Below, in pieces: positions 10,669-63,015 of a stretch of 64,000 nucleotides of DNA. The DNA is taken from sequence record PP712906.1; one strand, written 5' to 3'. Both the position numbers and the translations under genes were made by a program. Below the pieces are notes generated by a model. The model searched no databases. It had not been told where the DNA came from and saw only the letters and a list, made by a program, of their open reading frames with translations. How positions within the stretch are numbered: position 1 is the first letter of the stretch; each line of letters opens with the position of its first letter.

Positions 10669-11430
10669 ATGAGTATTGCAACTACATCTGGTCATCGCTT
10701 TGGTATGCTTGTTGAATCAATTGCAACGGGCTTACGTGGTACTGTAATTGGTATCACACAATGTATCGCGGGGTGCGAACTGCTTGAAGTTCAGTCAAAA
10801 GACAACAAAGGCATCGCCCGAACACACGTTTTTAGCTCAAAACTGGTTGAAATTATCAATTCTGACCGTGTAGATGAGTACGAAGCTATCTTTGCCGAGA
10901 CTAATACGACTATGCCGATTCGTCTTGGTGATGAAGTAGAAGACACAGTTTCAGAAGCGAAAGGGATCGTAACTGAAATTCAATACTCAGTGAATGCAGC
11001 ACCGAATGTGCTTTTGATCAAGCCATACTCAGAGCATGAAACGAATATTTATGCATCTGCGCGGGTCATTAGCTGTAAGAAAACGGGTCACTCGATTCAC
11101 GATAAGATCATCAACAATCGTTTAAAACGTGAGCGTGATGAGCTTAAAGTGGAGCTGCTGCAAAAAGCTCGATGCATGGCAACTGGCGCGACTGGCTTAG
11201 TCACTGCCATTTTCAATCAAGCTAGTGGAACAGTCTCAGTTGGCATTCAGCCCGTGAGTAAAGAGGGACGACTACTCGATACTCATTATACTGACATTGA
11301 ATTAGTCGAAATCATCACTGAAGAAGCAAAGCAAATCGTTCAACCGAAAGAGACAAAGCTGAAGAAAAGTGGCTCACTGCGCTCTCATGAACTGTCTTCG
11401 CTGAAACGCAGTGGTATGCATACAGTGTAA
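10669..11430 (+). CDS. protein with three tandem SH3-like repeats
   Basis: Three copies of a (L/F)G..V.....G..G.V..I motif. Confidence 0.65.
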   Translation: MSIATTSGHRFGMLVESIATGLRGTVIGITQCIAGCELLEVQSKDNKGIARTHVFSSKLVEIINSDRVDEYEAIFAETNTTMPIRLGDEVEDTVSEAKGIVTEIQYSVNAAPNVLLIKPYSEHETNIYASARVISCKKTGHSIHDKIINNRLKRERDELKVELLQKARCMATGATGLVTAIFNQASGTVSVGIQPVSKEGRLLDTHYTDIELVEIITEEAKQIVQPKETKLKKSGSLRSHELSSLKRSGMHTV

Positions 11431-48091: not shown

Positions 48092-48874
48092 ATGTTGAGA
48101 ACAAATATTGCGATTGAAGAACTGAAAATCCGAATGCATCCGTTCGATCAAGTTGCGAACGCAAACAACGACGATAGCTCAGTTCGCGACTGGCGCCAAA
48201 TCCCTGACGTTGCTAATGACAATATCTTGAAGAACTCGGTTCTACCGTCGTGGGTAATTCGAGAGTTTCACTGGCGTGATATTTCATTCAATCAACCATC
48301 AATGGGTGATCTGCCCGTTGAGTACAAAACAGAAGCAGGTGAAATCGGTAAATGTCAATCGCATTATCTCGGTGAACTTGATGATTGCAAGTTCTGGCGC
48401 CCTGATATTGTATCTTTGAATGCTCAATTCATTGATTCAAAAGACGTTGATAAAGCACTTGCAGAATTGCAAGCCGTTGATGTGTTTGACGCTTCACAAG
48501 GATTCGCTGACGGTCGACCTGACCCGGTTAGTCACAATGAACACGGTATAACCGATGATGAGCTTGAAGCTGCAATCGTCGAAGCTGAAATGGCAGCGGC
48601 TGTGGATGCTTTAAAAGTTGAGTCGCAATCGTTGTTCGATCCAGATCATGTTTATTACATGAATGAAAAGTATTATATTATCGGTGACGATCCGTTTGAC
48701 GAAAATTACTGCTATGCGTTGAATGCTGCAAAATACCCACAGCGTATTGCAAAATCCCAACTCGTAACCGATGAGCAATACAAAGAAGCTGAAGTTTTGA
48801 AGAATCAGTTCCCGCAGATGTGGACTGCTCAAGATTACGCAAAGCTTGCTAAGTTCATTCGCAGCAAAAAGTAG
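48092..48874 (+). CDS. acidic hypothetical protein
   Basis: 260-aa ORF. Confidence 0.75.
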   Translation: MLRTNIAIEELKIRMHPFDQVANANNDDSSVRDWRQIPDVANDNILKNSVLPSWVIREFHWRDISFNQPSMGDLPVEYKTEAGEIGKCQSHYLGELDDCKFWRPDIVSLNAQFIDSKDVDKALAELQAVDVFDASQGFADGRPDPVSHNEHGITDDELEAAIVEAEMAAAVDALKVESQSLFDPDHVYYMNEKYYIIGDDPFDENYCYALNAAKYPQRIAKSQLVTDEQYKEAEVLKNQFPQMWTAQDYAKLAKFIRSKK

Positions 48875-48880
48875 TTTCCG

Positions 48881-48911
48881 ATGCGGGTTGTTACGACATC
48901 CCGCATAAATA
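48881..48911 (+). promoter_or_regulatory. hairpin abutting a late-promoter-like CATAAATA
   Basis: ATGCGGG-T-TGT-TACG-ACA-T-CCCGCAT; CATAAATA at 48904-48911 is one mismatch from TATAAATA. Confidence 0.55.
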
Positions 48912-48943
48912 GTTCTATATGGACTAACAAGGAAATTACGACA

Positions 48944-49474
48944 ATGCCAACTCCTACAACAGGTGCGATTTCAATCGGTACCGTTCGTGATTATTTCAGT
49001 AGAACCGGCGCTGCTTCATTGTCTCAGTACTACAGAGGCGGCGGTATTGTTCCTGATATTACTGAAAATGCTCACGTACCAACTTCAGGCGCGATTAGCT
49101 TGAATGACTTGCGCGGTGTATATCGCTTGTCAACGTATACGACATCATTTACGACAACATACAACACCACTGTATCAACATCGAATACGACTTCGCGTAG
49201 TACATCAAGAAGTACAACTAGAAGTACTGCATACAGTACAACTCGCTCGACTGCGTATACTACTAGTTGGACAACTAGCCGAACTACGTCGGTGACTAAA
49301 GGTTCGTATTCGACATCATACACGACTTCTCGTGCTACATCACGTTCAACATCATATAGCACGACACGTTCAACAGCTTATACGTCTACGTGGACAACAT
49401 CATGGACAACCACGTACAACACAACAGTATCAACATCAAACACAACTTCGCGAAGCACGCAAGTTGCAGTTTAA
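48944..49474 (+). CDS. Thr/Ser-rich fibre/adhesin-like protein with tetrapeptide repeats
   Basis: AAGGA RBS and ATG at 48944. N-domain with two GAIS motifs, then 13 + 13 [YWFRVN]-[STN]-T-[STA] repeats around VTKGS. Confidence 0.85.
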   Translation: MPTPTTGAISIGTVRDYFSRTGAASLSQYYRGGGIVPDITENAHVPTSGAISLNDLRGVYRLSTYTTSFTTTYNTTVSTSNTTSRSTSRSTTRSTAYSTTRSTAYTTSWTTSRTTSVTKGSYSTSYTTSRATSRSTSYSTTRSTAYTSTWTTSWTTTYNTTVSTSNTTSRSTQVAV

Positions 49475-49486
49475 CAGGGTTAAATT

Positions 49487-49705
49487 ATGAGCTACAATGA
49501 AGAACACGAGAACCGAATCAACGAGCTTGAGAACAAGGTTTCAAAGCTTGAGTCGATAATTGAAAATCTGGTCGAGTCAATGACTTCGAACAGCGAAGCT
49601 ATTATCGAACATATTGCATCACTTGAGACCGAGAGGGATTCGATTCTTGCATCATATGATGACAAACTTAATGAGATCGTGACCAAATATGAACCCAAGC
49701 AATAG
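49487..49705 (+). CDS. small coiled-coil protein
   Basis: Heptad pattern INELENKVSKLESIIENL. Confidence 0.75.
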   Translation: MSYNEEHENRINELENKVSKLESIIENLVESMTSNSEAIIEHIASLETERDSILASYDDKLNEIVTKYEPKQ

Positions 49706-50543
49706 AGAAATGACTGGGTTCAATAACATTTCTCGCACCGGTAAGTTGAAATTACAATCCGATGCAGACAACGTCCGTGCCATGTGTATGGACGTTGTTC
49801 GTTTATTGAACTCTAAAAATATACCATCTAACTTCGACATCAATCACAATGACGGTGGTAACATCGGCGTGCATGAATGGGTGTCACAAATCCGCTTCAT
49901 TCACTTGAAATACATGAACGTTAATTTCCAAACGAAGATTTTCAAGCATGCCTATCATAACACTGAAAACGTCGTTGACTATTTTGACACGTTCAAACAT
50001 TCTGACAAATATCATCTATCAGCGAAGCCTAGATTTTTAGAATATGAAAACGTCGTATTTCTATGTGGATCGAATGTACTTGAATTGGCAATTGACTTTG
50101 ACAAGATTGATACGCTGGTCGAACATTATCCCGATTTAGTGATCAAACCACACCCGATTACGACGCTGTATTACATCAATATGCTTAAAACTCGATATGG
50201 ATCGAAGCGCGTGCTTTCTCAGAAGATCAGCGGTGTTGATGTTCTTAAATCTGCTAAACGTGTTTGGCTACCTTCAACGTCTGAGTTCTGGTTTAGTGCC
50301 TTGAACTACGACAAAGAAATCGGGTTTATCTCTAAAGATGGTTTCTGTGGAACGTACACGTCAATCATCAACGCAGTATGGGAATTGCATGAAGAAACCG
50401 GTGATCCATTGAAAGATATTGTGAATAAAATTATCTCGTCACCTTACTCAGGTCTGTATGGTAGTATGGCAGACTTTGAAGAGCATCACGAGAAATACTG
50501 TAATGTGATTCTAGAACTAGGGGGTAATTTCGATAATGTATGA
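49689..50543 (+). CDS. KpsC/KpsS-like (GT-B) polysaccharide transferase
   Basis: LVIKPHP motif, then LKSAKRVWLPSTSEFWFSALNYDK, the typical layout of beta-Kdo/capsule-modification transferases. Confidence 0.6.
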   Translation: MNPSNREMTGFNNISRTGKLKLQSDADNVRAMCMDVVRLLNSKNIPSNFDINHNDGGNIGVHEWVSQIRFIHLKYMNVNFQTKIFKHAYHNTENVVDYFDTFKHSDKYHLSAKPRFLEYENVVFLCGSNVLELAIDFDKIDTLVEHYPDLVIKPHPITTLYYINMLKTRYGSKRVLSQKISGVDVLKSAKRVWLPSTSEFWFSALNYDKEIGFISKDGFCGTYTSIINAVWELHEETGDPLKDIVNKIISSPYSGLYGSMADFEEHHEKYCNVILELGGNFDNV

Positions 50544-51168
50544 TTATGTAATTCACACTTCGATTAGTGACAAAAGTCAGCTAAACCAACTAGTGATGTT
50601 TGTCGGGTCTTTCATCGAGACGCACAAAAAAGGTCGCGTGGTCTGCGTGACTGATCTTGAACTTGATTTCACGATGCCTCGACTGTCATTTGAGAAAAAA
50701 CTACCCGAAGAGTACGTTTTCATTTCAGTTGACAATCTATTTTTACAAAAAACATACGGCGTTGTTAGCTACATTGACAGTGGTACTTGGCGATGTACTT
50801 GGCAAAAGAATGATCATGATGATTTCGTCATTAAAAAGCATGGCGAAAGAAGCGGGTTGATTCACCCTGATATTGCAATTGCAAATTACAATGTTTCGAG
50901 ACATGGCGATCTCGACATGTATTACAACGCGCTTCGTTACATTGAGAGCGCAATCACGATCAACTGCAAAGACTTTGCCCCTGCTGCTGAGAATAAAATC
51001 AACAGCTTTTACACGCTTGTATTTCCATGGGAGATTTATTTTCACGTTATGATCACTTACCAAGAGTATATTGATTCTGAATACGTTGAGCGAGTTCGCG
51101 CTAACTGTCATAAGTTCGCACACTCGGTTTATTACAGAAAATCAGGGTTGTTACGTGATGGGTTATGA
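50536..51168 (+). CDS. divergent GT-A-like (nucleotide-sugar transferase) protein
   Basis: QLVMFVGSF..., VCVTD, FISVDNLFL resemble the GT8-type layout; weak. Confidence 0.35.
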   Translation: MYDYVIHTSISDKSQLNQLVMFVGSFIETHKKGRVVCVTDLELDFTMPRLSFEKKLPEEYVFISVDNLFLQKTYGVVSYIDSGTWRCTWQKNDHDDFVIKKHGERSGLIHPDIAIANYNVSRHGDLDMYYNALRYIESAITINCKDFAPAAENKINSFYTLVFPWEIYFHVMITYQEYIDSEYVERVRANCHKFAHSVYYRKSGLLRDGL

Positions 51169-51841
51169 TGAGATAATTTTAGTATCTGGTCTTGATAGTT
51201 TAGTTCTATATGAATTTCTTGAACGAAAGCCACACCCTGTTTACTTTAAATGGGGTTTTGCTATCGACGACATTGAAATGGCTGCTTTGCCTGAAGAAAC
51301 AACTATCATAGAAATGCCAGAGATTTTGCATTTGAAACATGATCCGTATGAGTTCAAGACACCAAGAAATCCCGATTTAATTGGTCGGAATACGTTGATG
51401 TTTAACTCAGTTTTCCATGCATTCAGACCAAACGTAATTTATCGCGGGATGTTGAAAGGTGATGATTTCTATTACGACGCATCGCCTACGCATTCAGATG
51501 AAATCGCAGCTATGTGGTCGAAAATGCTGAATAAAGAGTGTCGAATTGAACAACCGTTTAAAGACAAAACGAAACGTGACATAATGCAAATGGCGGTCGA
51601 ATACGGTATTGATGCGAATTCATTACAGCATTGTTACAATCGAGAACACAACTGCGGTCGATGTAGCAAGTGTGTGGATGCACATGTTAATTCTATGTAC
51701 ACCGACAACCCAGACATCATGTGGCTGAAACGAATAGTTAATGACTCGGGTATGGCATCATTGGCTAATCACATGTTTGGTGTTGATACAGTTGACAGAA
51801 TAAAGGAATTTCTAGATGAATTTGATCGAACAGACTGCTGA
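51158..51841 (+). CDS. QueC-like PP-loop ATP pyrophosphatase with Zn site
   Basis: ILVSGLDS, GRNTLM, YYDAS, PFKDKTK.DI and HCY...CGRCSKC. Confidence 0.8.
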   Translation: MGYDEIILVSGLDSLVLYEFLERKPHPVYFKWGFAIDDIEMAALPEETTIIEMPEILHLKHDPYEFKTPRNPDLIGRNTLMFNSVFHAFRPNVIYRGMLKGDDFYYDASPTHSDEIAAMWSKMLNKECRIEQPFKDKTKRDIMQMAVEYGIDANSLQHCYNREHNCGRCSKCVDAHVNSMYTDNPDIMWLKRIVNDSGMASLANHMFGVDTVDRIKEFLDEFDRTDC

Positions 51842-52709
51842 TAAATTCGAGCATAGTTACCGAGAAGACGTTCAAGGCGTACAGTGGTATTTCGGTAGTC
51901 GAACGCATGATTTTTATCTGTATGGAATAGACTCTCTTATTGATAAAGTCAAAGACTGTGATTTTATTGAAATCAAGCATGTTCAAGAGGGTACGCTGGT
52001 TAAACGAGGCGAAGCTGCGGTCACGGTTACGATTACAGATCATAGTCGTATCGCATATGGGAACATGATTGAAACATTGTTGTACAATGAGTTGTGGTAT
52101 TCGAGCACGGTCGGTACGATTTTACACCGTTGTCTTGATGTGTTGCATGAAAACGGCTATGACGCTCGTTCAGCATACCCTCAAATCGGACGGGCGAGTT
52201 CAACGCCAGAACAGTCAGCTAAAGCAAGGGATGTGTTCGCACGTATATTTTATCAATCGTCGAATGAGAAAATACCCGTTGCGATGCACAGTGATATTTT
52301 AATCAACGGTGAGGAATATTGCATGGAACATTATAACGGCATCATGATTGATACTTTCGATAAGCAAGCTTGCATTGACTTGATCAACAAGAAAGACTTT
52401 CGAGGGACTGTGATGGTTGACTCTCAGCCAATAATTGAAACAATTGAGAGAGTTCTAGCTGAAACAAAATGCTTTGTTGCACAAGCTGAAAGTGTTACAC
52501 TCGATGAGTGGATAGAGATAGTGCGACATTTTAAAGGCAATAAGCGAATTTTCTACGGGATTGGTAGCTTTGCATTTAGCAATATATCACGAGACACATT
52601 TGGTTTGATTTACAAAGTGTGTGCAGTTAAGAAAAACGACAACTGGATCGGAGTTTCAAAGATGACGACAGGTAAACAAACATCGGCTGGTTATAAGGTT
52701 ATAGGTTAG
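51816..52709 (+). CDS. divergent, shortened Nampt/NAPRT-family phosphoribosyltransferase
   Basis: Aligns by eye to nadV in this window: HVQEGT vs AVKEGT, IETLL..LWYSSTVGT vs LETFI..LWYPTTVAT, MHS vs EHS, IDTFD vs MDSYD, RDT..K vs RDT..K. Confidence 0.8.
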   Translation: MNLIEQTADKFEHSYREDVQGVQWYFGSRTHDFYLYGIDSLIDKVKDCDFIEIKHVQEGTLVKRGEAAVTVTITDHSRIAYGNMIETLLYNELWYSSTVGTILHRCLDVLHENGYDARSAYPQIGRASSTPEQSAKARDVFARIFYQSSNEKIPVAMHSDILINGEEYCMEHYNGIMIDTFDKQACIDLINKKDFRGTVMVDSQPIIETIERVLAETKCFVAQAESVTLDEWIEIVRHFKGNKRIFYGIGSFAFSNISRDTFGLIYKVCAVKKNDNWIGVSKMTTGKQTSAGYKVIG

Positions 52710-52711
52710 TT

Positions 52712-53701
52712 ATGAATTATTGTATAGCGCCGTTTACATCGCCGTCTATTACACCAGACGGTTTTAAAATTTGCAGCATGCCAGGTCAGAAAGTATACCC
52801 TGATATTTCATTCTGGAATAGTGATGAAGTGATCAAGATTCGCGAACAGATTATCGCTGGTGAAATTCCTGAATCGTGCAAGGCATGTCGTAGTATGCGT
52901 GACGGGTTGATTGTGTCAAAAGAAAAACCAACTGATACTCATGTTGACTTGAATTTCAAAGCTCTTTACATTGCGCGGTCGAACAAGTGTGAATATGCTT
53001 GTGAAATGTGCAGTTCATCAATCTCACATAGCTATGACAAGAAATACAATGACGGTAAGTTGGGGATTATTGAGAATGACTTTGATGTTATTCCGTATCT
53101 GCACGAAACACAAGCCGTTGCTATTTCGGGCGGGAACCCTGTCATTGACAAAAAGGTTGCAGAGATTCTTGAGAATCTAGACCCTGACGTGGTAGAACGT
53201 TTCATTATTACTTCAAATGGGACAGTCTTTCCAGACAGATTCTTGAATGCAATTAAGAGATTGAAATGTGACGCGACTTTGATATTCTCTATGGACGGAC
53301 CGAAAGAGTTTAATGAAGTGGTTCGATCTGGTGCGAAGCAAGAGAGAATCTATCGCACCATTAATCGAGTTCTTGACGAGATTGAAGATTACCCAAACTT
53401 GCATGTGGCAATTGAGTATACTTTCACGAATAAGTCAATTCATCACTACGTTGATTTGTATGATGAAATGCTCTTCGAGATCAACCCGAAGCATTTGAAA
53501 AACAACTCAGTTAAAGTGATTGCGAATATGTGTACATACCCGCATCACCTTAGCGTTACAACTGTTCCCAAAACCGTCATTGATGACATATTGTTCAATC
53601 AGTTGCCGTATTTGAGACAGCAACCCAGCCCATTGTCAAATCAATTCAAACTTGGCTATGATAAGTTTTTGACTCAGTATCACAACAGCGTGATTATGTG
53701 A
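52712..53701 (+). CDS. radical SAM enzyme with N-terminal SPASM/twitch-like domain
   Basis: C..PF...C...WNS..IRE..G..P.SCKAC; SNKCEYACEMC; SGGNP; TSNGT; SMDG. Confidence 0.9.
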   Translation: MNYCIAPFTSPSITPDGFKICSMPGQKVYPDISFWNSDEVIKIREQIIAGEIPESCKACRSMRDGLIVSKEKPTDTHVDLNFKALYIARSNKCEYACEMCSSSISHSYDKKYNDGKLGIIENDFDVIPYLHETQAVAISGGNPVIDKKVAEILENLDPDVVERFIITSNGTVFPDRFLNAIKRLKCDATLIFSMDGPKEFNEVVRSGAKQERIYRTINRVLDEIEDYPNLHVAIEYTFTNKSIHHYVDLYDEMLFEINPKHLKNNSVKVIANMCTYPHHLSVTTVPKTVIDDILFNQLPYLRQQPSPLSNQFKLGYDKFLTQYHNSVIM

Positions 53702-54818
53702 TCAGATCATACGCTTTGATATGTGAGTAAAACTCTGGACACGCAGACGATAAATTAGTTTTCGTCTTCGTGTCTATTCTTTTGTTAAGAACAAAGAATT
53801 CAGGGTTGAATTTACAAACACTGTGTTCCAGAGTAAGACATTCAGCAACGTGTTTAAATGGTCTAGCCAAATCCTCACGCCCATCTTTTAAATACGCTTC
53901 TTCTTTCACTTTGAATCTTGATAATAGCTGGTCTCGAAATGCAACTGGAATGTTGTAAATTGAGTATGGATTATCAGGCTCACCGACGACATGCACAGAC
54001 AAACGTACACGTTTACCATCATAAAGCGAATCAAAATCTGAAACCAATGTTTCAAGATGTTCAAGAGTCACGTTTGACACGGTCGCAGTGATAACTACAT
54101 CAAAGTGTTGCTTGATGACTTCAATGTTTGATTTGACTTTTTTGATGTCTGCAAACAATCGAATATAATCTTGGTATTCTCGTAGACCGTCGATTGATAC
54201 GAACACCGTTGATGCATTAGCTTCTTTAAGCGATTTGATGAGATCTGAGCCATCGGCTAACACTAGTGATGAGCCATTCGTGAAAATATTCACTGCGGCT
54301 TTAATGTCGCCTACGTTGCGAAGAACTTCAGGAGCATTTGACGAGCGGGTAATTTCACCGCCTAGAATTGTCAATGACGAAAGTCCTTTGCTGATTGTGT
54401 TGATTGTCGTACTCAAATCATTGAATCGAGTACTTGAATCTTCTTCATTGAACAATCTAGCCTTCAAGTCTGATAATTTGCTGTAGCAGTAACGACAAGC
54501 TTGATTACATTCATTACTAGGGAATACTTGTAGCCAGCGAACTGAATCAGCGGGCATAATAGGTGAAACTTCAGAATCGTGTTCTGTTAGACGCTGTGGG
54601 TCATTATCAGTAATGCACATTTGACATGCCTTTGACAGCTTGCTCATGTCGTGGTTTAGCATTGCTTCACGATAAGCGACAAGCTTTTCATCATTCCAAG
54701 CGTCTGCTAGTGTTTTTTCATCAGTAAACCATTCATAATCAGCCGAACAGCAAAACGTAATTTGATTGTTTGCTCGTGTGATGAACTGCTTGAACGGCAT
54801 ATAACATAGTGGTTTCAT
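53694..54818 (-). CDS. radical SAM enzyme with N-terminal SPASM/twitch-like domain
   Basis: C.MPF...FCC...AWND..REAM..CQMC; SNECNQACRYC; LGGEI; FTNGS; SIDG. Confidence 0.9.
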   Translation of the reverse strand: MKPLCYMPFKQFITRANNQITFCCSADYEWFTDEKTLADAWNDEKLVAYREAMLNHDMSKLSKACQMCITDNDPQRLTEHDSEVSPIMPADSVRWLQVFPSNECNQACRYCYSKLSDLKARLFNEEDSSTRFNDLSTTINTISKGLSSLTILGGEITRSSNAPEVLRNVGDIKAAVNIFTNGSSLVLADGSDLIKSLKEANASTVFVSIDGLREYQDYIRLFADIKKVKSNIEVIKQHFDVVITATVSNVTLEHLETLVSDFDSLYDGKRVRLSVHVVGEPDNPYSIYNIPVAFRDQLLSRFKVKEEAYLKDGREDLARPFKHVAECLTLEHSVCKFNPEFFVLNKRIDTKTKTNLSSACPEFYSHIKAYDLIT

Positions 54819-54828
54819 GTTTCTGTCC

Positions 54829-55401
54829 TTAGTTAAAAATGCTACTTGTATATATAGCAGTCTTCAGGGCATTGAAATGATCGTCAACTCTATTCACGTG
54901 TATGCATTCAATGTCAAATCTTTCTTGGATTTCTCGGATGTTGTCTAGTGAGTCGTCGATGAAGTATTTCACCTCATGCAGTTCACACAGCTTCTCGACA
55001 TACTTTGCCTTCGAGTCGAAGTACTCAATCGAAATCACCTCACTTATCATCCCTGGGAATAACGCATTTAGATTATACACGCGATTTGACCATGAAGTTC
55101 TACTCATGCTGAACTTGGTTAGTGCAATGATGTTATATCGGTCTGAGAGTTCGCGTAACGCATCGTAAGCGTCTTCATATGCGGGTATGTACTTTGCACA
55201 CTCATGTTCATTGTATGCGCCTATAAGCTTTCCTAGTTGCATGTCACTCACGTTAATAAATAAAGAGCGTGCATCGGTATCAGTATTTGAACCGTTGATA
55301 TTCAAATTATCAAGCATGCCTAATTGCATCATGAAGAATGGCAAGTTGGCTTTCCAGTTAAGCAAAACCCCGTCTACATCTATGATGATCGTCTTTTTCA
55401 T
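54829..55401 (-). CDS. HAD hydrolase, T4 gp30.2-like
   Basis: IIIDVDGVLLNW...LPFF; NR.YNLNALFPG; FIDD. Confidence 0.8.
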   Translation of the reverse strand: MKKTIIIDVDGVLLNWKANLPFFMMQLGMLDNLNINGSNTDTDARSLFINVSDMQLGKLIGAYNEHECAKYIPAYEDAYDALRELSDRYNIIALTKFSMSRTSWSNRVYNLNALFPGMISEVISIEYFDSKAKYVEKLCELHEVKYFIDDSLDNIREIQERFDIECIHVNRVDDHFNALKTAIYTSSIFN

Positions 55402-55442
55402 TACTACCTCGAAAAAAATTAAAATTTTTCGAAAAAAAGTAT

Positions 55443-55470
55443 TGACACTTAGTTTCGTTCATGTAATACT
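55443..55470 (+). promoter_or_regulatory. early promoter
   Basis: TTGACA followed by TAATACT, preceded by A-tracts (UP-like). Confidence 0.65.
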
Positions 55471-55534
55471 TATCTCAACTTAACGAAACAAGTTAAACAA
55501 ACAAGACAACATTTAATCAAAAAAGGAAATACAC

Positions 55535-55771
55535 ATGAAAAACTTCAAATCAATCGCAACTGCACTTCTTCTAACTATGACTTTCTCTGCTGGTGCTTTC
55601 GCACACGGCTCAGGCGGTACGCTAGGTGGTAACCTTGGCATCGAAATGTGCAAAATCGGAGCAATCAACTGCGGCTTCCCTAAACAAGAAGTTAAAGTTG
55701 AAAAAGAAGCACCAAAAGCTGAAAAGGCTGAGGTGAAAGAAGTTAAGCTGGCAACTGATCTGACAGCTTAA
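55535..55771 (+). CDS. small exported protein
   Basis: Signal peptide ending AFA; mature HGSGG...CKIGAINC; own promoter and terminator. Confidence 0.8.
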   Translation: MKNFKSIATALLLTMTFSAGAFAHGSGGTLGGNLGIEMCKIGAINCGFPKQEVKVEKEAPKAEKAEVKEVKLATDLTA

Positions 55772-55775
55772 TTGA

Positions 55776-55801
55776 AATGTGCAGATTCGTCTGCACATTT
55801 T
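55776..55801 (+). terminator. intrinsic terminator
   Basis: AAATGTGCAGA-TTCG-TCTGCACATTT-T. Confidence 0.9.
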
Positions 55802-55870
55802 GTTTAATAACGACTCACCAAGACATATACTAAAGTCTCACACAATCAAGCATAAAATGGGAGCCATACA

Positions 55871-57364
55871 ATGCTAAATCTTAATCAAAATATCGCAATC
55901 GCAACTGACAGCTACAAAGTTTCACACTGGTCTCAATTCCCTCGTGGTCTAGAGTACAGCCAATATTACGTCGAAAGCCGGGGTGGTAAGTTCGACAAAA
56001 TTATGGTCGATGGTATGGCATACATGTGTCGTATTCTCGAAAAAGGTGTTTCGATGAACGATGTCAAGCGTGCGAAACGTCTGTTCAAAAAGCACTTCGG
56101 TTCTGAAGTCTTCAATGACAAGGGTTGGGACATCATCGTTAACGAACTGAAAGGCAAACTGCCTATTAAGATTCGTGCGGTCAAAGAAGGTACTGTAGTA
56201 CCAGTTAAACACCCTATCTTGACGATTGAGAACACTGATCCACGTTTTGGTTGGCTGCCTGGCTATCTTGAAACGTTCATCTTGCGTGCTCTTTGGTACC
56301 CGACGACTGTAGCAACGATCTCGTTCGAAGTGAAGAAAATCATTCGCCAATTCATGAAGAAAACGGTTGATGATGAACGCATTGCAGAACAAGAGCCATT
56401 CAAACTTCACGACTTTGGTTCTCGTGGTGTATCAAGTGGCGAATCTGCGGCTATCGGCGGCTCTGCTCACTTGAAAAACTTCTTGGGTACTGACACTGTA
56501 GAAGCACTTGTTGCAGTTGAAGAACTTTACGCTGAAGATGTTGAAGACTTCATTGCAGGATTCTCAATCCCTGCACGTGAACACTCAACAACTACAATCT
56601 ACAAAGAAGCTGGTGAAGACCAAGCATTCTTGAACTCTATTGAGCAATGGGGTGCTGCATTATACGCTTGTGTAATGGACAGCTACGACTACGAAGCAGC
56701 AATGAATCGTGTCTCGACTGGTCGCTTCAAAGAGCTAATCATCAGCAAAGGCGGTACGTTTGTTGCTCGTCCTGACTCTGGTGTGCCTGTAGATGTAGTA
56801 ATGAAAGGTCTTGAGATTCTTGGTAAAAACGTTGGTTATACAATCAACAGCAAGGGTTACAAAGTATTGCACCCTAGCTACCGTATCATTCAAGGTGACG
56901 GCGTGAACATCGAAGAAATTCGTCGAATCTTGTCTTACATGGAAAGTAAAGGCTGGTCGGCAGAAAATATTGCATTCGGTATGGGTGGCGGGTTGCTTCA
57001 ACAACTTGACCGTGATACTCAACGCTTTGCAATGAAAATGTCAGCGGCAATCATCAACGGCGAATACGTTAGCGTGTTCAAAATGCCGAAGACTGATCCG
57101 ACAAAAGCATCAAAAGCAGGTTTCTTGGATTTGATTGCAGTTGATGCAGACAATCCGAACCCAGCGGCTCGTGGTTACGTGACGTTCTCTTCTGAAGATT
57201 ACGACAATCGCGTACACCCGAAAAGCGTGATGCAGACAATCTTCGAAGACGGTGTAACAGTTGCCGACTTCTCACTAGAAGAAGCGCGTAAACTGTCTGA
57301 CGTACAAGCTGACTTCCTGAACGAAGGTGAATGGAAAATCGCGAAAAAGATTCAAACTGCGTAA
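55871..57364 (+). CDS. nadV: nicotinamide phosphoribosyltransferase
   Basis: TDSYKVSH, LHDFGSRG, FLGTDT, PAREHS, DSYD, RPDSG, IIQGDG, FGMGGGLLQ and RDT..FAMK. Confidence 0.96.
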   Translation: MLNLNQNIAIATDSYKVSHWSQFPRGLEYSQYYVESRGGKFDKIMVDGMAYMCRILEKGVSMNDVKRAKRLFKKHFGSEVFNDKGWDIIVNELKGKLPIKIRAVKEGTVVPVKHPILTIENTDPRFGWLPGYLETFILRALWYPTTVATISFEVKKIIRQFMKKTVDDERIAEQEPFKLHDFGSRGVSSGESAAIGGSAHLKNFLGTDTVEALVAVEELYAEDVEDFIAGFSIPAREHSTTTIYKEAGEDQAFLNSIEQWGAALYACVMDSYDYEAAMNRVSTGRFKELIISKGGTFVARPDSGVPVDVVMKGLEILGKNVGYTINSKGYKVLHPSYRIIQGDGVNIEEIRRILSYMESKGWSAENIAFGMGGGLLQQLDRDTQRFAMKMSAAIINGEYVSVFKMPKTDPTKASKAGFLDLIAVDADNPNPAARGYVTFSSEDYDNRVHPKSVMQTIFEDGVTVADFSLEEARKLSDVQADFLNEGEWKIAKKIQTA

Positions 57365-57398
57365 AATGTGACATTGATCACTAAAAATCGTAAATTTA

Positions 57399-57471
57399 GG
57401 GTTGCTTCGGCAGCCCTTTTTTCGTATTATAGCTACATCGAAACGAGATACGAAAACAAAGAGAGAACATT
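57399..57471 (+). promoter_or_regulatory. terminator/early-promoter cassette
   Basis: GGGTTGC-TTCG-GCAGCCC-TTTTTT; TATTAT at 57425; ATCGAAACGAGATACG. Confidence 0.88.
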
Positions 57472-57798
57472 ATGCAACTAACTACTAACATGACTAAAGC
57501 GCAAAAAACTAAAGTTGTTGAAGGTTTCAACTTCGAGCGTGAAACAGGTCAAGGTCAATATAAGTTCCGTAACGGTTCTTATGCTATGGAAGGATCAGAT
57601 GTTGCACGTCGATTCAATCTAATCTCTACTATCGTGACTGGTAAGCCAGCGATTATTCCTGAAGCGACAGTTGCTGATTTTGACCGCATTGTTCTTATGC
57701 AAGCAATGACTGATCAGTTCTTAACAATGAGTTCTGGTAAAGCTTCTCTTGAAGAATCTAACGAATTTGGTAAAAAAGTGCTTGCACACTTCGCTTAA
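57472..57798 (+). CDS. hypothetical early protein
   Basis: ORF behind the cassette. Confidence 0.75.
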   Translation: MQLTTNMTKAQKTKVVEGFNFERETGQGQYKFRNGSYAMEGSDVARRFNLISTIVTGKPAIIPEATVADFDRIVLMQAMTDQFLTMSSGKASLEESNEFGKKVLAHFA

Positions 57799-57839
57799 TT
57801 CAATTAGAATACTTACATCAACTGAGAAGAGAGAACATT

Positions 57840-58082
57840 ATGAAAGCAACTATCCCACAACTTAAAAAGAAAATCAATTCACTTGCTGACAAATACGGTT
57901 ACGCTTTTGACAAAAACGCACCGTACTACGTAAATGACGGTCGCATCAAAGCAATCGAAGCTGCAATCATTACTGTCAAAGAAGACGGTGAAGCGAATCC
58001 TACTCGTCGTTATGAGATCAGCGAAAAGCAGCTTGTGTCACTGAACAACTGGGTTCGTGATTTGAAACACAAATATCTGTGA
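57840..58082 (+). CDS. hypothetical protein
   Basis: GAGAGAACATTATG start. Confidence 0.75.
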   Translation: MKATIPQLKKKINSLADKYGYAFDKNAPYYVNDGRIKAIEAAIITVKEDGEANPTRRYEISEKQLVSLNNWVRDLKHKYL

Positions 58083-58088
58083 GGTAGT

Positions 58089-58328
58089 ATGTACGCAATA
58101 CAAGCAACTAGTCATTTCGTTCAATTCGTTCTAAAGAGCGTGAGCGTAAATGGCTTCCCGAAATACGTGCCAATGTATACGTTTAATTTGGGAATCATAA
58201 CAACATTCGCAACTCTTGAAGAATGTCAAAAGTTCATCGACGAGTACGATCCCAACCCCGACGCATGTCTGCCATGGCGTGCATATAAACTACACGATCT
58301 TGAAATCGCTCAACTGGAGACAAAATAA
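58089..58328 (+). CDS. hypothetical protein
   Basis: GAGGT RBS. Confidence 0.7.
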   Translation: MYAIQATSHFVQFVLKSVSVNGFPKYVPMYTFNLGIITTFATLEECQKFIDEYDPNPDACLPWRAYKLHDLEIAQLETK

Positions 58329-59596
58329 TGGGTTCATTTAACACTACTTGCGCAATCACTCGTACACCAATTCAAGAAGGCGGTCTTGCGCGTGTCTTTT
58401 TCTTAGAAATGGACGCATTTGCAACAAACTATTACGGTCGTCAAGGTCTGTTTAAGAACATCATGATGGGATGTGGTTGCTACCCATGGGATAATTTCAA
58501 GATCATCGGTTACCCGCTGCTCGGCAAATATGCAGATTACAACAATTACGAGTTTGAAGATGCAGATATGGCTAATATGACGCTGGCTGCAATCAACAAA
58601 CGATACGTACCAAATCGAGTAGCTGAAGGTAAGACGCTTGAAGATTACAATGAATATCATGATTACATGGAAATCGACGAGATTTCAGACATGAGTCAGC
58701 TTCAAGATATGGAACACAGTGGTTCGCTTCGAGTTAAAGGTGCGCATGGTAATGTAACTGCGGTTGTTAAAATGGCAATGCATGAAGAAGTGTACCAAAT
58801 GATGCTTGAAGGTAACGTGACTGAGGGTTGGGGTGATGATGCGAAGACGTATTCATTTGCCGACGACTTGAAACGTCTCACAGACAAGTACAGTGGTTCA
58901 GTATCTGGTTTTGATGCATTAACCGAGAAACAACAGAAGCGAATGATTGACATGCGTGATGAGCTTTACGCTAAGGCTGACGCAGGCGAAATCAATGAAC
59001 GCACTGGCGAACCATATACTCGTGAAGAGGCTGATAAGAGCTTCAACCAAATGGTTGAGTGGCTTGCTGAAGATCGTTTTGAGCTTGGTGACGAACGCGC
59101 TGAATGGTTTGCACATTCATCCCATTACCGAGATATGGCAGATCTTAAAGACAATCAAGAACTAGTTCACAAACTAGCTGAAGCAGTCGTGGGTGCAAAA
59201 TGGTGTGCTCGTTGGATGATGTGTAATAACTATGAATTCGCGCCAGTGATGACATGCGGTCAAGATTACGATACTGCTTCTCATGCGTCGCGACTTCGTA
59301 AGCTTGCTGACATCATCGAGTCGAAGAAAAACAAATATCACTACGAAGAGCACGTTGAACTTGATGTAGTTCGTTCTGAGCGCGTTGAACTATCTCTAAG
59401 TAATCTAAAAGAGCGTTTTGCTGATTGGTACGATGAAGATGAACAAGAATATCAAGATCTACTGTCAGCGATTGAAAGTGTAAAAGAACAATCAAGCTTT
59501 GTTTACGGTGATGGTTCTATTTTCGATAAATTCGTTGAAGAATACGACGTTCTACGTGATGTTGAAGAAAATACACAAATTCATTTCAAAAAGTAG
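58328..59596 (+). CDS. acidic hypothetical protein (422 aa)
   Basis: MGSFNTTCAITRTPI N-terminus; TAATG-coupled. Confidence 0.8.
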   Translation: MGSFNTTCAITRTPIQEGGLARVFFLEMDAFATNYYGRQGLFKNIMMGCGCYPWDNFKIIGYPLLGKYADYNNYEFEDADMANMTLAAINKRYVPNRVAEGKTLEDYNEYHDYMEIDEISDMSQLQDMEHSGSLRVKGAHGNVTAVVKMAMHEEVYQMMLEGNVTEGWGDDAKTYSFADDLKRLTDKYSGSVSGFDALTEKQQKRMIDMRDELYAKADAGEINERTGEPYTREEADKSFNQMVEWLAEDRFELGDERAEWFAHSSHYRDMADLKDNQELVHKLAEAVVGAKWCARWMMCNNYEFAPVMTCGQDYDTASHASRLRKLADIIESKKNKYHYEEHVELDVVRSERVELSLSNLKERFADWYDEDEQEYQDLLSAIESVKEQSSFVYGDGSIFDKFVEEYDVLRDVEENTQIHFKK

Positions 59597-59642
59597 TTGA
59601 CAAGGTGCGTGAGTGGCTGTAATATGTCACTCAACGCCTAAC
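59597..59642 (+). promoter_or_regulatory. early promoter with the -10 box inside an inverted repeat (copy B)
   Basis: TTGACA - 17 - TAATAT; 34 nt identical to 10043-10076. Confidence 0.8.
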
Positions 59643-59656
59643 GAGAGAACAATATT

Positions 59657-59917
59657 ATGAAAGATGAAATTACGCTACACATTAAGAATCATTGGTTGCA
59701 CCGTCGCGCATATTTCGTACTTTACAATAAGCCGATGAAATTCAGAAAGAAAGCATTGGCTGAGTGGGAAGAAAAACGTAGTGAATTTTGGTACGTAGTT
59801 CAACGACTCAATCCTGAGTTTTTCGAGCAATGTCCTGACGGTATGCAACCGTATTTGACTTGCGCACCAGTGGCTCGCAATTGCACACAACACTTCTACA
59901 TCAAATTTGACAAATAA
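59657..59917 (+). CDS. hypothetical protein
   Basis: ORF behind the promoter. Confidence 0.7.
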   Translation: MKDEITLHIKNHWLHRRAYFVLYNKPMKFRKKALAEWEEKRSEFWYVVQRLNPEFFEQCPDGMQPYLTCAPVARNCTQHFYIKFDK

Positions 59918-59928
59918 GAGAGAACATC

Positions 59929-60648
59929 ATGAAAAAATTAATCGCAATCGTAGCACTAGCAGCATCAGTAGCAATGACTGGTTGTACTGACACCATCGAC
60001 AATTCAGCAACTGATCAGCTAAAAGCAGCTATGCCAGTTCTTTCTCAAACTGAAAAAGATATGCTGAATGTATTCGCTGCTCCGAACTTCTTGAGCCGTT
60101 ACGACAACATGTATGCAGAAGTGGTCAAAAATCGCGTACACTTCGGTCAGAAGCCGATTCCACGAGCAGATACAGAAGTGCCTTTCTGTGATGTAATCGA
60201 CGCTGTAATCGCAGCAGAGCGAGAAAACAATCTAACAGAACGTGATTACTCACTGAGCAATCAATGGAAGCTGAAATACGGCATCACACTTCTTGAGCAA
60301 TGTAATCAATCAGACCGTGCTCGTATTGAAATGCAGGTCGCGAAAGCAAAAGCCGATGCCGAAGCAGCTAAAGATCGCGTAGTCATCGAAGAGCAAGAAT
60401 TCAGCAAGAAAGAAATCAAAGCTGAGAAAATCATCGAAGACACAGTTGTAATCAAAGATGATGTTCTACTATCACCTGAACTTGTTCGCGAACTACGTGG
60501 TTCAGTTAAAGACTGTAATCGAGCTAAAGTCAAGCTAATGAGTGTAGTCGATGCTGGTGAGCAACTAACTACAAAGCACTATGACGAGGTGAAAGGTCTA
60601 GTTCTACAGTGTGAAATGTTGAAACTAGAAGTTGAACTCAACAAATAA
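59929..60648 (+). CDS. lipoprotein, paralog of 47389-48084
   Basis: Lipobox MTGC; shared Cys pattern. Confidence 0.8.
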   Translation: MKKLIAIVALAASVAMTGCTDTIDNSATDQLKAAMPVLSQTEKDMLNVFAAPNFLSRYDNMYAEVVKNRVHFGQKPIPRADTEVPFCDVIDAVIAAERENNLTERDYSLSNQWKLKYGITLLEQCNQSDRARIEMQVAKAKADAEAAKDRVVIEEQEFSKKEIKAEKIIEDTVVIKDDVLLSPELVRELRGSVKDCNRAKVKLMSVVDAGEQLTTKHYDEVKGLVLQCEMLKLEVELNK

Positions 60649-60662
60649 CAGGTCTTGAAAAG

Positions 60663-60688
60663 AAAAAGCCCCTTAATTGGGGCTTTTT
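60663..60688. terminator. bidirectional intrinsic terminator (repeated sequence)
   Basis: AAAAAGCCCCTTAATTGGGGCTTTTT between convergent operons. Confidence 0.9.
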
Positions 60689-60692
60689 CTTT

Positions 60693-61745
60693 TCAATTTA
60701 CCATTTTGATTTGAATTTGATTGTCCATGTAAGCCATTTTCTTTTCAAATTCAACATCATATTCTGGTCGATGTTCGTATTCGACTGAAAGCATTTGCTT
60801 CAGACAACGGTACAATTCCGACTTGTAATACCCTTCTTTCATTCCCTTCATCTGTTCATATTGCTTTTTCATAGCAGCTTTGATTATCTTCGGGTCCATG
60901 AATTTGATTGACATTTCTCGCGGTGCTTTTACTGTGCCAAAGTCAACAAACACCTGAGCCTTTTCAGCTACTTGAATGAAGTCATAAATCGTGTCATAAC
61001 TCATTCGACTTAGCGTGTGGTGCATACAAACATGTTTGCTATGTTCTTTTAGCAACGGTACATTTGCAAGCATCAAGTCGTGGTCGATGTTCTGACGAAT
61101 GTATTCGTTGCGCTCTTTTCCGCCGTCACATGAAATTGTAAACACTAGACGATGTTTGTACTTTTTACATATGGCTAGAATCTTCTTCGCAAGTGGCGTA
61201 TGCAACACAGTACCATTTGTCAGAATGTAAACTTCCGCATTTGTTTCTTCCATGACTTCAGTCAGAACTTCGACTGTTCTCTTGTCCATGAACGGTTCGC
61301 CGCCGTATAGCACAACAGTTTCAACACCCTTCGGGATACTGAAATCGAGTTGTGTGTAATCGTAGTGGTCGTCAATGTCATACAAGTCCATGTATGTTTT
61401 GCTATTCTTGCCATAGCACATTCGACACGCTAGGTTACATTTGTTTGACATCAATATTTGAATTGTTCTAGGATGCTCTTCGAGTGCTTCATATTCGAAG
61501 TACTTCTGATCAGACAATTCGCCATAACTCATGCATTCTTTGCAGTATTCTGGTAAAGTGTCATACTCAAACATTTTGGCACGATGTTCATTGATTATGT
61601 CACTGTGCCACCAGTCTTCAACGTTCGGGAATGGTTCACTTAGCTGAGAACAGCAAATGTGATACCCATCCGGTTTTGCGTCACGTGTATTAAAGGGAGA
61701 GCCACAAAGTGGTCTCTTCCCGTCTTTAAATCCGAATTTATCCAT
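60693..61745 (-). CDS. radical SAM enzyme with N-terminal SPASM/twitch-like domain
   Basis: C.SPF...ICC...WWHS..RAKM...PEYCKEC; SNKCNLACRMC; YGGEPF; LTNGT; SCDG. Confidence 0.92.
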   Translation of the reverse strand: MDKFGFKDGKRPLCGSPFNTRDAKPDGYHICCSQLSEPFPNVEDWWHSDIINEHRAKMFEYDTLPEYCKECMSYGELSDQKYFEYEALEEHPRTIQILMSNKCNLACRMCYGKNSKTYMDLYDIDDHYDYTQLDFSIPKGVETVVLYGGEPFMDKRTVEVLTEVMEETNAEVYILTNGTVLHTPLAKKILAICKKYKHRLVFTISCDGGKERNEYIRQNIDHDLMLANVPLLKEHSKHVCMHHTLSRMSYDTIYDFIQVAEKAQVFVDFGTVKAPREMSIKFMDPKIIKAAMKKQYEQMKGMKEGYYKSELYRCLKQMLSVEYEHRPEYDVEFEKKMAYMDNQIQIKMVN

Positions 61746-62017
61746 TAATCTAGCTCATCAAGAAGTGATTGAAATTCTTCGTCGCGTTCAGCGTCGATTG
61801 TACCAGTCATCAACTCTGTTAGAGTCTTCAACGACTTGATCTCTGGTGGTTGAGGGCGTAGATCTTCGAGAATGTGAATGATTGACTCGACCGGGAGATC
61901 GTGATTTACAATCTCGTCTGGCAGGTGGTGTTTGTAAACGCAGTCGTCGCCCCAATCAATAACTACTGCATGTTCCCATTTGTCGATTTCTAGTATTTTA
62001 AAATTTGGTTTCATCAT
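61745..62017 (-). CDS. small acidic hypothetical protein
   Basis: ATGA/TAATG-coupled between the GT and the radical SAM gene. Confidence 0.75.
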   Translation of the reverse strand: MMKPNFKILEIDKWEHAVVIDWGDDCVYKHHLPDEIVNHDLPVESIIHILEDLRPQPPEIKSLKTLTELMTGTIDAERDEEFQSLLDELD

Positions 62018-63015
62018 AAGCCCCAGAGTTCTTTCCAATGTGTTTTAGCATCTTGTCGATACTTCTCAATGTCAAATTTTTGATATTTCTGTTCGATTGC
62101 ATCATCAATGACGCGGATCAACGTATCATTGTTTATATCAGCACGAATCACTGGGAAAATAAAATCCCTTGTGTAAGGTGCGTCATGCTGAACAATACAA
62201 GGTATGTACTGACATGCTTCTAATAACGCATATGGCATAATCTCGATTCTAGACATATGAAGCAAAACTTTACTTTTCATCATATGTGCTATGACTCGCT
62301 CACGCCGCTGACAAGTTTCGACTATACAATCAACACCATTCGGGATTCTTATTGGTTCGGTTGTGAATAGACGAATTTTAAGACCGCTGTATGCAAGCGC
62401 GTTTAGCATTTCGGGTATCTGCTTACGTTTGTATGCACCTGACACGATAATCACGTCAGACGCTTCAGCAGCGTCAATATCAGCTTGTGATATAGACGGA
62501 AGCTCAAATGGTTCAAATGCAGTCACATGTTTGCCACCAATTACTTCTCGACCCCATTGTGCAATCCCGTTCGATTGAGCAATGTTAGTGACTAATGACG
62601 TTGACATCATGTGTCGCCATTGAGGTAAGTTGTAAATTTGATGAATGTCCATGTATTCGCGATATGAATCTGGTACTATCAAGTCACCGAAATGATGTTG
62701 GTTGTAACAACGGCGCTTCGCTTCGATACATGCGCGGAGTGCTTCATATGAATGCGTGTAGATAATCGCTTCGCTATCAATCGCGTTGATAACCATTGCG
62801 TTTGCCTTGTAGTCTTTATAAGACCGTTTCGTTAAAATGAAGTCACACCCGAAATCCCATTTGCTCACGTGTGGACACGATTCGTCTCCGAGTACAATAA
62901 CTTTGACATCACAGTTTAGTGATTGCATTAAACGAACGTGATCTTGAATGAATGTGTAAATACCGCCGCCAATTCCCAACATAAAGTCAGTTACTACGTA
63001 GCGAACTTTTTTCAT
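62014..63015 (-). CDS. GT-B glycosyltransferase (GT4-like)
   Basis: N-terminal GGGIYTF; C-terminal S..EIMPYALLEA (Ex7E) motif. Confidence 0.8.
   Translation of the reverse strand: MKKVRYVVTDFMLGIGGGIYTFIQDHVRLMQSLNCDVKVIVLGDESCPHVSKWDFGCDFILTKRSYKDYKANAMVINAIDSEAIIYTHSYEALRACIEAKRRCYNQHHFGDLIVPDSYREYMDIHQIYNLPQWRHMMSTSLVTNIAQSNGIAQWGREVIGGKHVTAFEPFELPSISQADIDAAEASDVIIVSGAYKRKQIPEMLNALAYSGLKIRLFTTEPIRIPNGVDCIVETCQRRERVIAHMMKSKVLLHMSRIEIMPYALLEACQYIPCIVQHDAPYTRDFIFPVIRADINNDTLIRVIDDAIEQKYQKFDIEKYRQDAKTHWKELWGL

Follow-up and report, generated by a model that had tools for sequence, protein, structure and literature searches.

Three radical SAM genes in a KVP40-like phage

The DNA examined here is the first 64 kb of the genome of Vibrio phage TCU-VP03-AIR1 (PP712906.1), a KVP40-like phage, and this whole stretch is referred to below as the window. 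Within 9 kb of it lie three genes for radical S-adenosylmethionine (SAM) enzymes, designated rSAM1, rSAM2 and rSAM3 (copies 1, 2 and 3). Bases 52000-62000 of the window were found to be 100% identical to PP712906.1 at the same coordinates and 99% identical to Vibrio phage KVP40. All three open reading frames (ORFs) are open and complete, coincide with annotated coding sequences of PP712906.1, and passed the Pfam model Radical_SAM (PF04055) with scores of 37.8, 45.4 and 51.1 bits, respectively (gathering threshold 29.5). They are annotated as radical SAM proteins in PP712906.1, with copy 3 being wrongly named '7-carboxy-7-deazaguanine synthase', and the earliest names of their KVP40 orthologues were 'moaA/nifB/pqqE family' or 'heme biosynthesis domain protein'.

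Alignment of the three proteins identified four invariant cysteines before the radical SAM core (C4, C21, C56 and C59 in copy 1 numbering), together with a PF following the first cysteine, W35, R44, the CxxxCxxC motif of the SAM cluster (C93, C97 and C100) and a glycine pair at positions 140-141. In all three, the cysteines before the core follow the pattern C-x16-17-C(C)-x34-40-CxxC and end approximately 30-35 residues ahead of CxxxCxxC. The alignment thus contains the invariant PF, W and R noticed in a sequence-only reading of this DNA. The glycine motif, given there as GGE/NP, is GGNP in copy 1, whereas copies 2 and 3 have GGEI and GGEP, respectively, and copy 1 lacks the second cysteine of the 'CC' pair.

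Family placement and excluded identities

All three proteins were found to match the NCBIfam family NF033640 (N_Twi_rSAM, 'twitch domain-containing radical SAM protein'), with E-values of 3.4e-34, 5e-37 and 6.5e-39 for rSAM1, rSAM2 and rSAM3, respectively, and with alignments spanning nearly the full model (positions 3-330, 2-396 and 4-381 of 398). The corresponding scores of 118.6, 127.9 and 134.1 bits lie under the curated cut-off of 170, as is likewise the case in KVP40, so that the NCBI rule would not name the three as members of NF033640. Matches were also obtained to PHROG 14086 for all three (E 1e-147 to 1e-174). The phage proteins share with NF033640 the twitch cysteine pattern followed by the CxxxCxxC core and a helical C-terminal part, while being shorter (329-374 amino acids (aa) against a 398-position model).

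Relatives were collected by searching 1.84 billion representative sequences with a profile of the three sequences, which gave 20,562 matches at E <= 0.001, 33 of them at E <= 1e-30. The set examined consisted of 110 relatives of 320-425 aa and the three window proteins; 103 of these relatives and the window proteins made up an alignment of 106 sequences. All 106 match NF033640 at E <= 1e-10, and invariant among them (rSAM3 numbering) are C14, C31, C68, C71, C103, C107, C110, G148, G149, S205 and R217. Judged by sequence, this comparison shows the three genes to encode functional-looking radical SAM enzymes of an N-terminal-twitch, NF033640-like (PHROG 14086) family. The inverted domain order is a property of a family already named in the database.

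Identities suggested by previous names or by neighbouring genes were examined and rejected. Scores against QueE models were 26-36 bits, compared with equivalog cut-offs of 206-260, and the phage possesses a separate QueE-like gene (KVP40.0284). For the NrdG activase, scores of 17.6 and 29.3 bits were obtained against cut-offs of 126 and 131, and the reductase genes nearby are the aerobic nrdA and nrdB. MoaA, NifB and PqqE identities were likewise discarded, with MoaA-type models scoring far under their cut-offs. The initial observation of paralogous radical SAM ORFs, each with a cysteine-bearing domain in front of the core and thus an order different from that of QueE and NrdG, is therefore confirmed by the intact ORFs, the alignment, the Pfam, NF033640 and PHROG 14086 matches and the low QueE, NrdG and MoaA scores.

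The front domain is read as a twitch

A twitch domain has one auxiliary cluster, whereas SPASM proper has two clusters and a seven-cysteine motif that includes CxxCx5Cx3C. The usual pattern among the 110 relatives and the window proteins was C-x17-CC-x35-CxxC, some 35 residues ahead of CxxxCxxC, and these cysteines precede the core in every relative collected. No conserved cysteine cluster was identified after the core in the three window proteins, which possess four to five cysteines before the core only, leaving room for one auxiliary cluster and not for the two of SPASM. A full two-cluster SPASM domain was consequently ruled out by the cysteine count and the lack of the seven-cysteine motif. 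The Pfam SPASM model matched 35 of the 106 sequences, lying N-terminal of the core wherever its position was printed, and E 0.01 was not reached by any of the three window proteins. The sequence-only reading had spoken of a SPASM/twitch domain; a SPASM-type domain does stand ahead of the core, but by its cysteine count it appears to be of the one-cluster twitch kind.

An AlphaFold2 model of rSAM3 (predicted local distance difference test (pLDDT) 94.5, predicted template modelling score 0.92) presented the front domain as a hairpin and helices, and residues 9-88 folded alone (100 sequences) gave a pLDDT of 83.7. In a structural search of 48,161 chains with the front domain, only three chains reached Z 2, the best being residues 162-244 of BtrN (Z 3.5 over 71 residues, root mean square deviation (rmsd) 2.8 A). 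Foldseek with the front domain alone also placed BtrN first, at an E-value of 2.6 that is not significant. With its single auxiliary cluster, BtrN serves as the reference for twitch enzymes (PMC10337720, PMC10114670). This radical SAM dehydrogenase of butirosin synthesis (PDB 4M7S/4M7T) would have in common with the phage domain one cluster site, formed by a CxxC and by two cysteines flanking a hairpin, and it acts on a sugar-like carbon. Its twitch follows the core, however, whereas that of the phage enzymes occupies residues 1-90 ahead of the core, unlike the BtrN/MoaA type, and the two cores resemble each other only marginally in sequence (E 0.0097). We read the front domain as a twitch moved to the N-terminus, for which the sequence support is good and the structural support weak when taken alone. 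The four invariant cysteines of this domain of approximately 80 residues are predicted to hold one auxiliary [4Fe-4S] cluster, and should do so in all three enzymes.

The modelled core of rSAM3 resembles SkfB, BlsE, CteB, SuiB, viperins and anSME, with template modelling (TM) scores of about 0.4 only. SPASM/twitch maturases (CteB 5WGG, SkfB 6EFN, SuiB 5V1T and anSME 4K36) provide the best sequence and fold matches of the core, and their auxiliary-cluster domain belongs to the Pfam family that was also matched in relatives of the phage proteins. The phage enzymes differ from them in lacking a recognition element for ribosomally synthesised peptides that undergo post-translational modification (RiPPs), in lacking the seven-cysteine two-cluster motif, in their inverted order and in having transferases, not leader peptides, as genomic partners. 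BlsE (PDB 7VOB), a cytosylglucuronate decarboxylase, ranked second in Foldseek (E 1.2e-7, with 216 columns at an rmsd of 3.7 A) and was a weak match by sequence. Its substrate is an activated nucleoside sugar, for which it provides an example of radical chemistry, although it has the core alone in common with the phage enzymes and may well catalyse a different reaction.

Three old subfamilies in separate cassettes

Identity among the three copies is 22-26% (22% and 26% with copy 1), and each copy is closer to relatives in other phage contigs than to the copies in its own genome. In a FastTree phylogeny of 120 sequences, which carried long-branch warnings, each copy fell into a clade of its own, the three clades having SH-like support of 96, 99 and 95. 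Sequence comparison thus shows the paralogy to be real but old, with the copies representing three anciently diverged subfamilies; recent duplication within the phage is excluded by the closer kin elsewhere and the three separate clades.

The genes belong to three transcription units on both strands, namely cassette A (+), which ends with rSAM1, rSAM2 (-) and cassette C (-), which ends with rSAM3. Among 40 Vibrio phage records, family matches were found at one to four places per record, with phage K566 having four members. Phage nt-1 possesses copy 3 and its two partner genes (cassette C) only, at 71-89% identity; copies 1 and 2 are absent from it, as is any homologue of the Thr/Ser tetrapeptide-repeat protein that heads cassette A. 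On metagenomic contig L007, copy 1 is present and copy 2 absent within the 17.7 kb read. In the D-series Vibrio phages, as in the KVP40 group, the rSAM1 and rSAM2 genes lie side by side. In phage D525, the rSAM2-like gene lies in two frames (L011:9273-10095), indicating a frameshift or pseudogene, and the adjoining rSAM1 orthologue (334 aa) is intact.

The sequence-only reading had envisaged that a single substrate undergoes three radical steps in sequence. The presence of all three genes within 9 kb and the recurrent adjacency of rSAM1 and rSAM2 are in keeping with such a model. Against these stand the divergence of the copies into three clades with closer kin in other phages, their three transcription units on two strands, the variation in copy number, the occurrence of copy 3 without the others in nt-1 and the disrupted rSAM2-like gene beside an intact rSAM1 orthologue in D525, so that a single three-step pathway is very improbable. 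What the comparison of phages shows, as far as gene content and order can, is three enzymes housed in separate cassettes.

Gene content of the cassettes

Features of the window are compiled in Table 1. Cassette A (48944-53701, + strand) is tightly packed. The D-series Vibrio phages and metagenomic contigs L007-L009 were found to keep it as a block (protein identity 34-61%), so that three diverged phage groups share the run of genes that starts with the repeat protein and ends with copy 1. Repeat proteins similar to the one at its head also head operons of transferase and radical SAM genes in unrelated phage contigs (homologues in L007, L023 and L105), and in these repeat proteins aromatic residues and arginine are plentiful and regularly spaced. 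The 284-aa protein gave a match to Pfam GT52 (E 6e-4, below cut-off), and its Atlas structure has a TM score of 0.57 to the KpsS/LipB family; a profile of its family gave no usable match among PDB sequences. This family recurs in L007, L010, L018, L023, L025, L105 and L106. The QueC-like gene matches half of the QueC model only, and in L007-L009 the QueC-like enzyme and rSAM1 form one polypeptide (P0028, E 7e-83). Elsewhere in the KVP40 genome (G001 69710-74325 and 153732-154613), genes for a canonical QueC (183 bits), a QueD-like and a QueE-like protein were identified, and no TGT/DpdA was found by Pfam in KVP40. The D-series phages and L007 additionally have a nucleotidyltransferase-like gene with a weak precomputed match to NTP_transf_3.

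Cassette C (63015-60693, - strand) consists of genes for a GT4-like protein of 333 aa, a 90-aa acidic protein and rSAM3. The 333-aa protein had no significant Pfam match and its family profile no usable match among PDB sequences. Its ten best matches by Atlas features (0.98) were all of GT4, and the KVP40 record notes a PF00534 match. Homologues adjoin family members in L019, K566 (L022), L014 and L016, with that of L014 being weak. For both the 284-aa and the 333-aa protein, assignment as a transferase is no more than a lead.

Table 1. Features of the window discussed in the text (positions on the 64-kb stretch).
Feature	Position	Strand	Remarks
CATAAATA	48904..48911	+	One base off a T4-type late-promoter box; its end is 32 nucleotides ahead of the repeat-protein start codon
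Thr/Ser tetrapeptide-repeat protein	48944..49474	+	50% Ser+Thr; N-terminal adaptor; heads cassette A; candidate target
72-aa small protein	49487..49705	+	Heptad-like, probably coiled coil (by eye); kept in L007, L023 and L105
284-aa protein	49689..50543	+	Probably a GT-B-type transferase (lead only)
210-aa protein	50536..51168	+	Kept with cassette A
QueC-like PP-loop ATPase	51158..51841	+	Diverged; not the canonical QueC of the phage; fused to rSAM1 orthologue in L007-L009
Nampt-like phosphoribosyltransferase paralogue	51816..52709	+	Short; directly upstream of rSAM1
rSAM1	52712..53701	+	329 aa; orthologue KVP40.0260; final gene of cassette A; GGNP instead of GGEP
rSAM1 N-terminal twitch domain	52712..52936	+	Cys 4, 21, 56, 59
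rSAM1 CxxxCxxC SAM-cluster motif	52988..53011	+	Cys 93, 97, 100
rSAM2	53694..54818	-	374 aa; orthologue KVP40.0261; convergent with rSAM1, 8-base overlap
rSAM2 CxxxCxxC motif	54486..54509	-	Cys 104, 108, 111
rSAM2 N-terminal twitch domain	54564..54818	-	Cys 5, 23, 24, 65, 68
HAD-like homologue of T4 30.2	54829..55401	-	Upstream of rSAM2 on the same strand; pairing not kept elsewhere
rSAM3	60693..61745	-	350 aa; orthologue KVP40.0272; final gene of cassette C
rSAM3 CxxxCxxC motif	61416..61439	-	Cys 103, 107, 110
rSAM3 N-terminal twitch domain	61482..61721	-	Residues 9-88; Cys 14, 31, 32, 68, 71
90-aa acidic protein	61745..62017	-	Between the 333-aa gene and rSAM3; 80% identity in nt-1
333-aa protein	62014..63015	-	Probably a GT4-type transferase (lead); heads cassette C

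The slot between a 260-aa gene and nadV, which in KVP40-type phages is occupied by the repeat protein and its enzymes, was found to be variable (window 48092-55401, compared with L021:19616-20824 in nt-1 and L022:7195-14191 in K566). In nt-1, it holds an FG-GAP protein with an N-terminus that by eye resembles the same adaptor, and no enzymes. The K566 slot opens with a lipoprotein-like protein of 475 aa and also holds three radical SAM genes, which come after it, and a 333-aa protein homologue. In the vicinity of nadV, the records of nt-1 (L021:17445-17966) and K566 (L022:18715-19164) include a gene for a PagP-like lipid A acyltransferase, which the window lacks at this place.

The heptamer ATAAATA is rarer in the 64-kb window than expected (6 copies against 11.8). 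Three of its five + strand copies lie 17-32 nucleotides before start codons, those of the repeat-protein gene, an ORF at 10669 and nrdA (start taken from PP712906.1). These copies, among the sites at 48904-48911, 8025, 10645 and 63766, may be late-type promoters. Scanning for sigma-70 promoters and terminators gave counts at chance level, and no exact TATAAATA was found near the genes.

Relatives of the enzymes in other phages and in bacteria

Five of the best 150 relatives (P0037, P0043, P0045, P0048 and P0172) are fusions of a GT8 transferase to the twitch and radical SAM domains, with GT8 E-values down to 6e-19, and these fusions sit in clusters of further GT8 genes. On contig L105, a single + strand run encodes two Thr/Ser/Trp-repeat proteins, a small protein, a GT-B-like and a GT2-like transferase, two GT8 proteins, a radical SAM protein and a further GT8 protein. 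Similar gene sets were identified on L023, L025, L018 and L106, that of L023 being directly behind tail-fibre genes. On L014, two family members and the weak 333-aa homologue lie between tail-fibre genes and a fibre assembly gene. Kin of copy 3 were also found in similar cassettes of other phages.

The T4-like metagenomic phage contig L019 (1280-12302) has a GT8-radical SAM fusion and two further family members; immediately upstream of these, the phage encodes a SAM synthetase of its own, an ADP-ribosylglycohydrolase and a protein resembling Nudix/NMN-adenylyltransferase. Six proteins of 790-1076 aa (P0033, P0035, P0036, P0052, P0054 and P0060) each contain two Pfam Radical SAM stretches and a SPASM-type match, and further matches of the profile search have three matched stretches per polypeptide.

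At greater distance, the family was found in arrays. Among 78 IMG/VR loci, the transferase set was present in the nearest two only (29-32% identity). Many of the distant viral loci (L107-L182) have 5-10 radical SAM matches in less than 17 kb, partnered by Asp/Asn beta-hydroxylases (5), B12-binding radical SAM proteins (5), QueC-like proteins (2) and a carbamoyltransferase, with most partners having no Pfam match. As many as 12 radical SAM genes have been reported from one marine genome of T4-like type (PMC5332604). In prokaryote genomes (L026-L103), the best loci were mostly tandem arrays in metagenome-assembled genomes of Bdellovibrionota; 46 of 134 nearest neighbours were themselves radical SAM proteins, and a few were nucleotide-sugar enzymes. 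Roughly 95 loci together contained 183 distinct twitch-plus-CxxxCxxC units, with up to seven in 15 kb (e.g. L039 and L040).

Proposed function

The gene neighbourhoods suggest that the three enzymes belong to separate sugar-transferase cassettes, and radical tailoring of phage-made glycans is put forward as their most likely function, tentatively, as it may well prove wrong. Each enzyme would reductively cleave SAM and abstract a hydrogen atom from a carbon of a sugar, either on a glycan built by the phage or on the activated precursor of such a glycan. The role of the twitch cluster would be to accept the electron or to hold the substrate, as in BtrN-like twitch enzymes that oxidise sugar-like substrates, and the product could be an oxidised, epimerised or deoxygenated sugar. 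For cassette A, the target may be a glycan decorating the Thr/Ser-repeat protein, and for cassette C it would be a different acceptor. The repeat protein or its glycan had been named as the simplest candidate target in the sequence-only reading, which is reasonable for copy 1 given the conserved block, the recurrent operons and the joint absence of the repeat protein and the cassette A enzymes from nt-1, but probably does not extend to copy 3, which nt-1 carries without a repeat protein. Phage-encoded transferases are known to glycosylate virion proteins in mycobacteriophages, where the transferase genes are likewise found beside structural genes and acceptor regions are Ser/Thr-rich, although host, phage type and acceptor proteins differ. 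We know of no radical SAM enzyme in the mycobacteriophage virion glycosylation systems.

Several findings weigh against glycan tailoring. No paper on, or biochemistry of, any NF033640-type family member was found in a literature search, nor were RNA expression data found for this stretch. By its absolute values (Z 3.5, and E 2.6 in Foldseek), the structural match to BtrN is weak, and the nearest structure-bearing sequence relatives of the core are the peptide maturases 8vpo (E 1.4e-13), CteB and SkfB. The 284-aa and 333-aa proteins are assigned as transferases from weak Pfam and Atlas similarity, and the QueC-like and Nampt-like partners of rSAM1 are atypical for glycan enzymes. Furthermore, the other 76 of the 78 viral loci, and the bacteria, have arrays of paralogues without the modelled transferase families, so that the wider family is not tied to transferases and peptide chemistry has to be kept in view; the mix of partners in the distant arrays is as compatible with peptide as with sugar chemistry.

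The main rival is accordingly direct modification in the manner of RiPPs, in which hydrogen would be abstracted from Thr, Ser, Trp, Tyr or Arg of the repeat protein to give cross-links, epimers or comparable alterations, with the transferases acting separately. The kinship of the core to SPASM/twitch peptide maturases, which includes matches to the PapB, WgkB and YhhB models and, among weak ones, to the EpeE/YydG epimerase, points in this direction, as do the regularly spaced aromatic and arginine residues of the repeat proteins and the beta-hydroxylases and B12-binding radical SAM proteins of distant viral arrays. Yet no RiPP recognition element or PqqD-like domain was matched by Pfam in the three proteins, and the neighbouring proteins (72-333 aa) include none of leader-core type, in agreement with the earlier remark that no RiPP-like precursor is evident. 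The repeated covalent fusion to GT8 transferases, the position of the L105 radical SAM protein as the sole non-transferase enzyme of a five-transferase operon and the retention of rSAM3 in nt-1 without any repeat protein also argue against this rival, and on balance direct peptide modification appears unlikely, if still a serious contender.

Small-molecule or nucleotide chemistry is an improbable explanation, by which rSAM1 and the QueC-like and Nampt-like proteins would build a modified base, nucleotide or cofactor for DNA or tRNA modification or NAD metabolism, unrelated to the repeat protein. It would account for the fusion of the QueC-like enzyme to the rSAM1 orthologue in P0028, the Nampt-like gene that is always adjacent, the QueC-like genes of distant arrays, nadV in the same region and the nucleotidyltransferase-like gene of the D-series phages and L007. 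It would account for copy 1 only, however, and it sits poorly with the half-length QueC match, with the separate canonical QueC, QueD-like and QueE-like genes and the lack of a TGT/DpdA by Pfam, and with enzymes that travel as a block with the repeat protein and transferase-like genes. Slightly more improbable again is remodelling of the host envelope, in which the cassettes, above all C, would alter sugars of the host lipopolysaccharide or capsule, for example to block superinfection, and no phage protein would be decorated. Cassette C has no obvious phage acceptor and occurs in nt-1 without a repeat protein, a PagP-like acyltransferase is encoded in the same region of related phages, the K566 slot starts with a lipoprotein-like protein ahead of its three radical SAM genes, and the bacterial neighbours include a few nucleotide-sugar enzymes; but the recurrent phage neighbours are repeat-protein and tail-fibre genes, and no genes for membrane-anchored transferases or flippases were seen in the cassettes.

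Glycan tailoring can also be extended to the relatives, in a wider proposal that is possible but doubtful. The N-terminal-twitch enzymes would then tailor a widespread, undescribed phage system that glycosylates small Thr/Ser/Trp-repeat fibre proteins, the radical step yielding an unusual sugar, a sugar-protein cross-link or a cross-link within the protein on a virion appendage, and this type of enzyme would have multiplied to form large tandem arrays, both in jumbo and T4-like phages and among predatory Bdellovibrionota.

Significance

The architecture of the three enzymes is already catalogued (NF033640, PHROG 14086), and it is the link to operons of repeat proteins and transferases that seems to be undescribed. 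Misleading names are corrected by the present placement ('7-carboxy-7-deazaguanine synthase', 'moaA/nifB/pqqE family' and 'heme biosynthesis domain protein'). The GT8 and QueC-like fusions and the operons headed by Thr/Ser/Trp-repeat proteins provide concrete candidate substrates, and deleting and expressing the three genes is easy, since KVP40 is a classical model phage available in culture. If the proposed function is true, radical chemistry would join phage protein glycosylation, and there would be a way into a family of which marine phages and predatory bacteria carry many copies.

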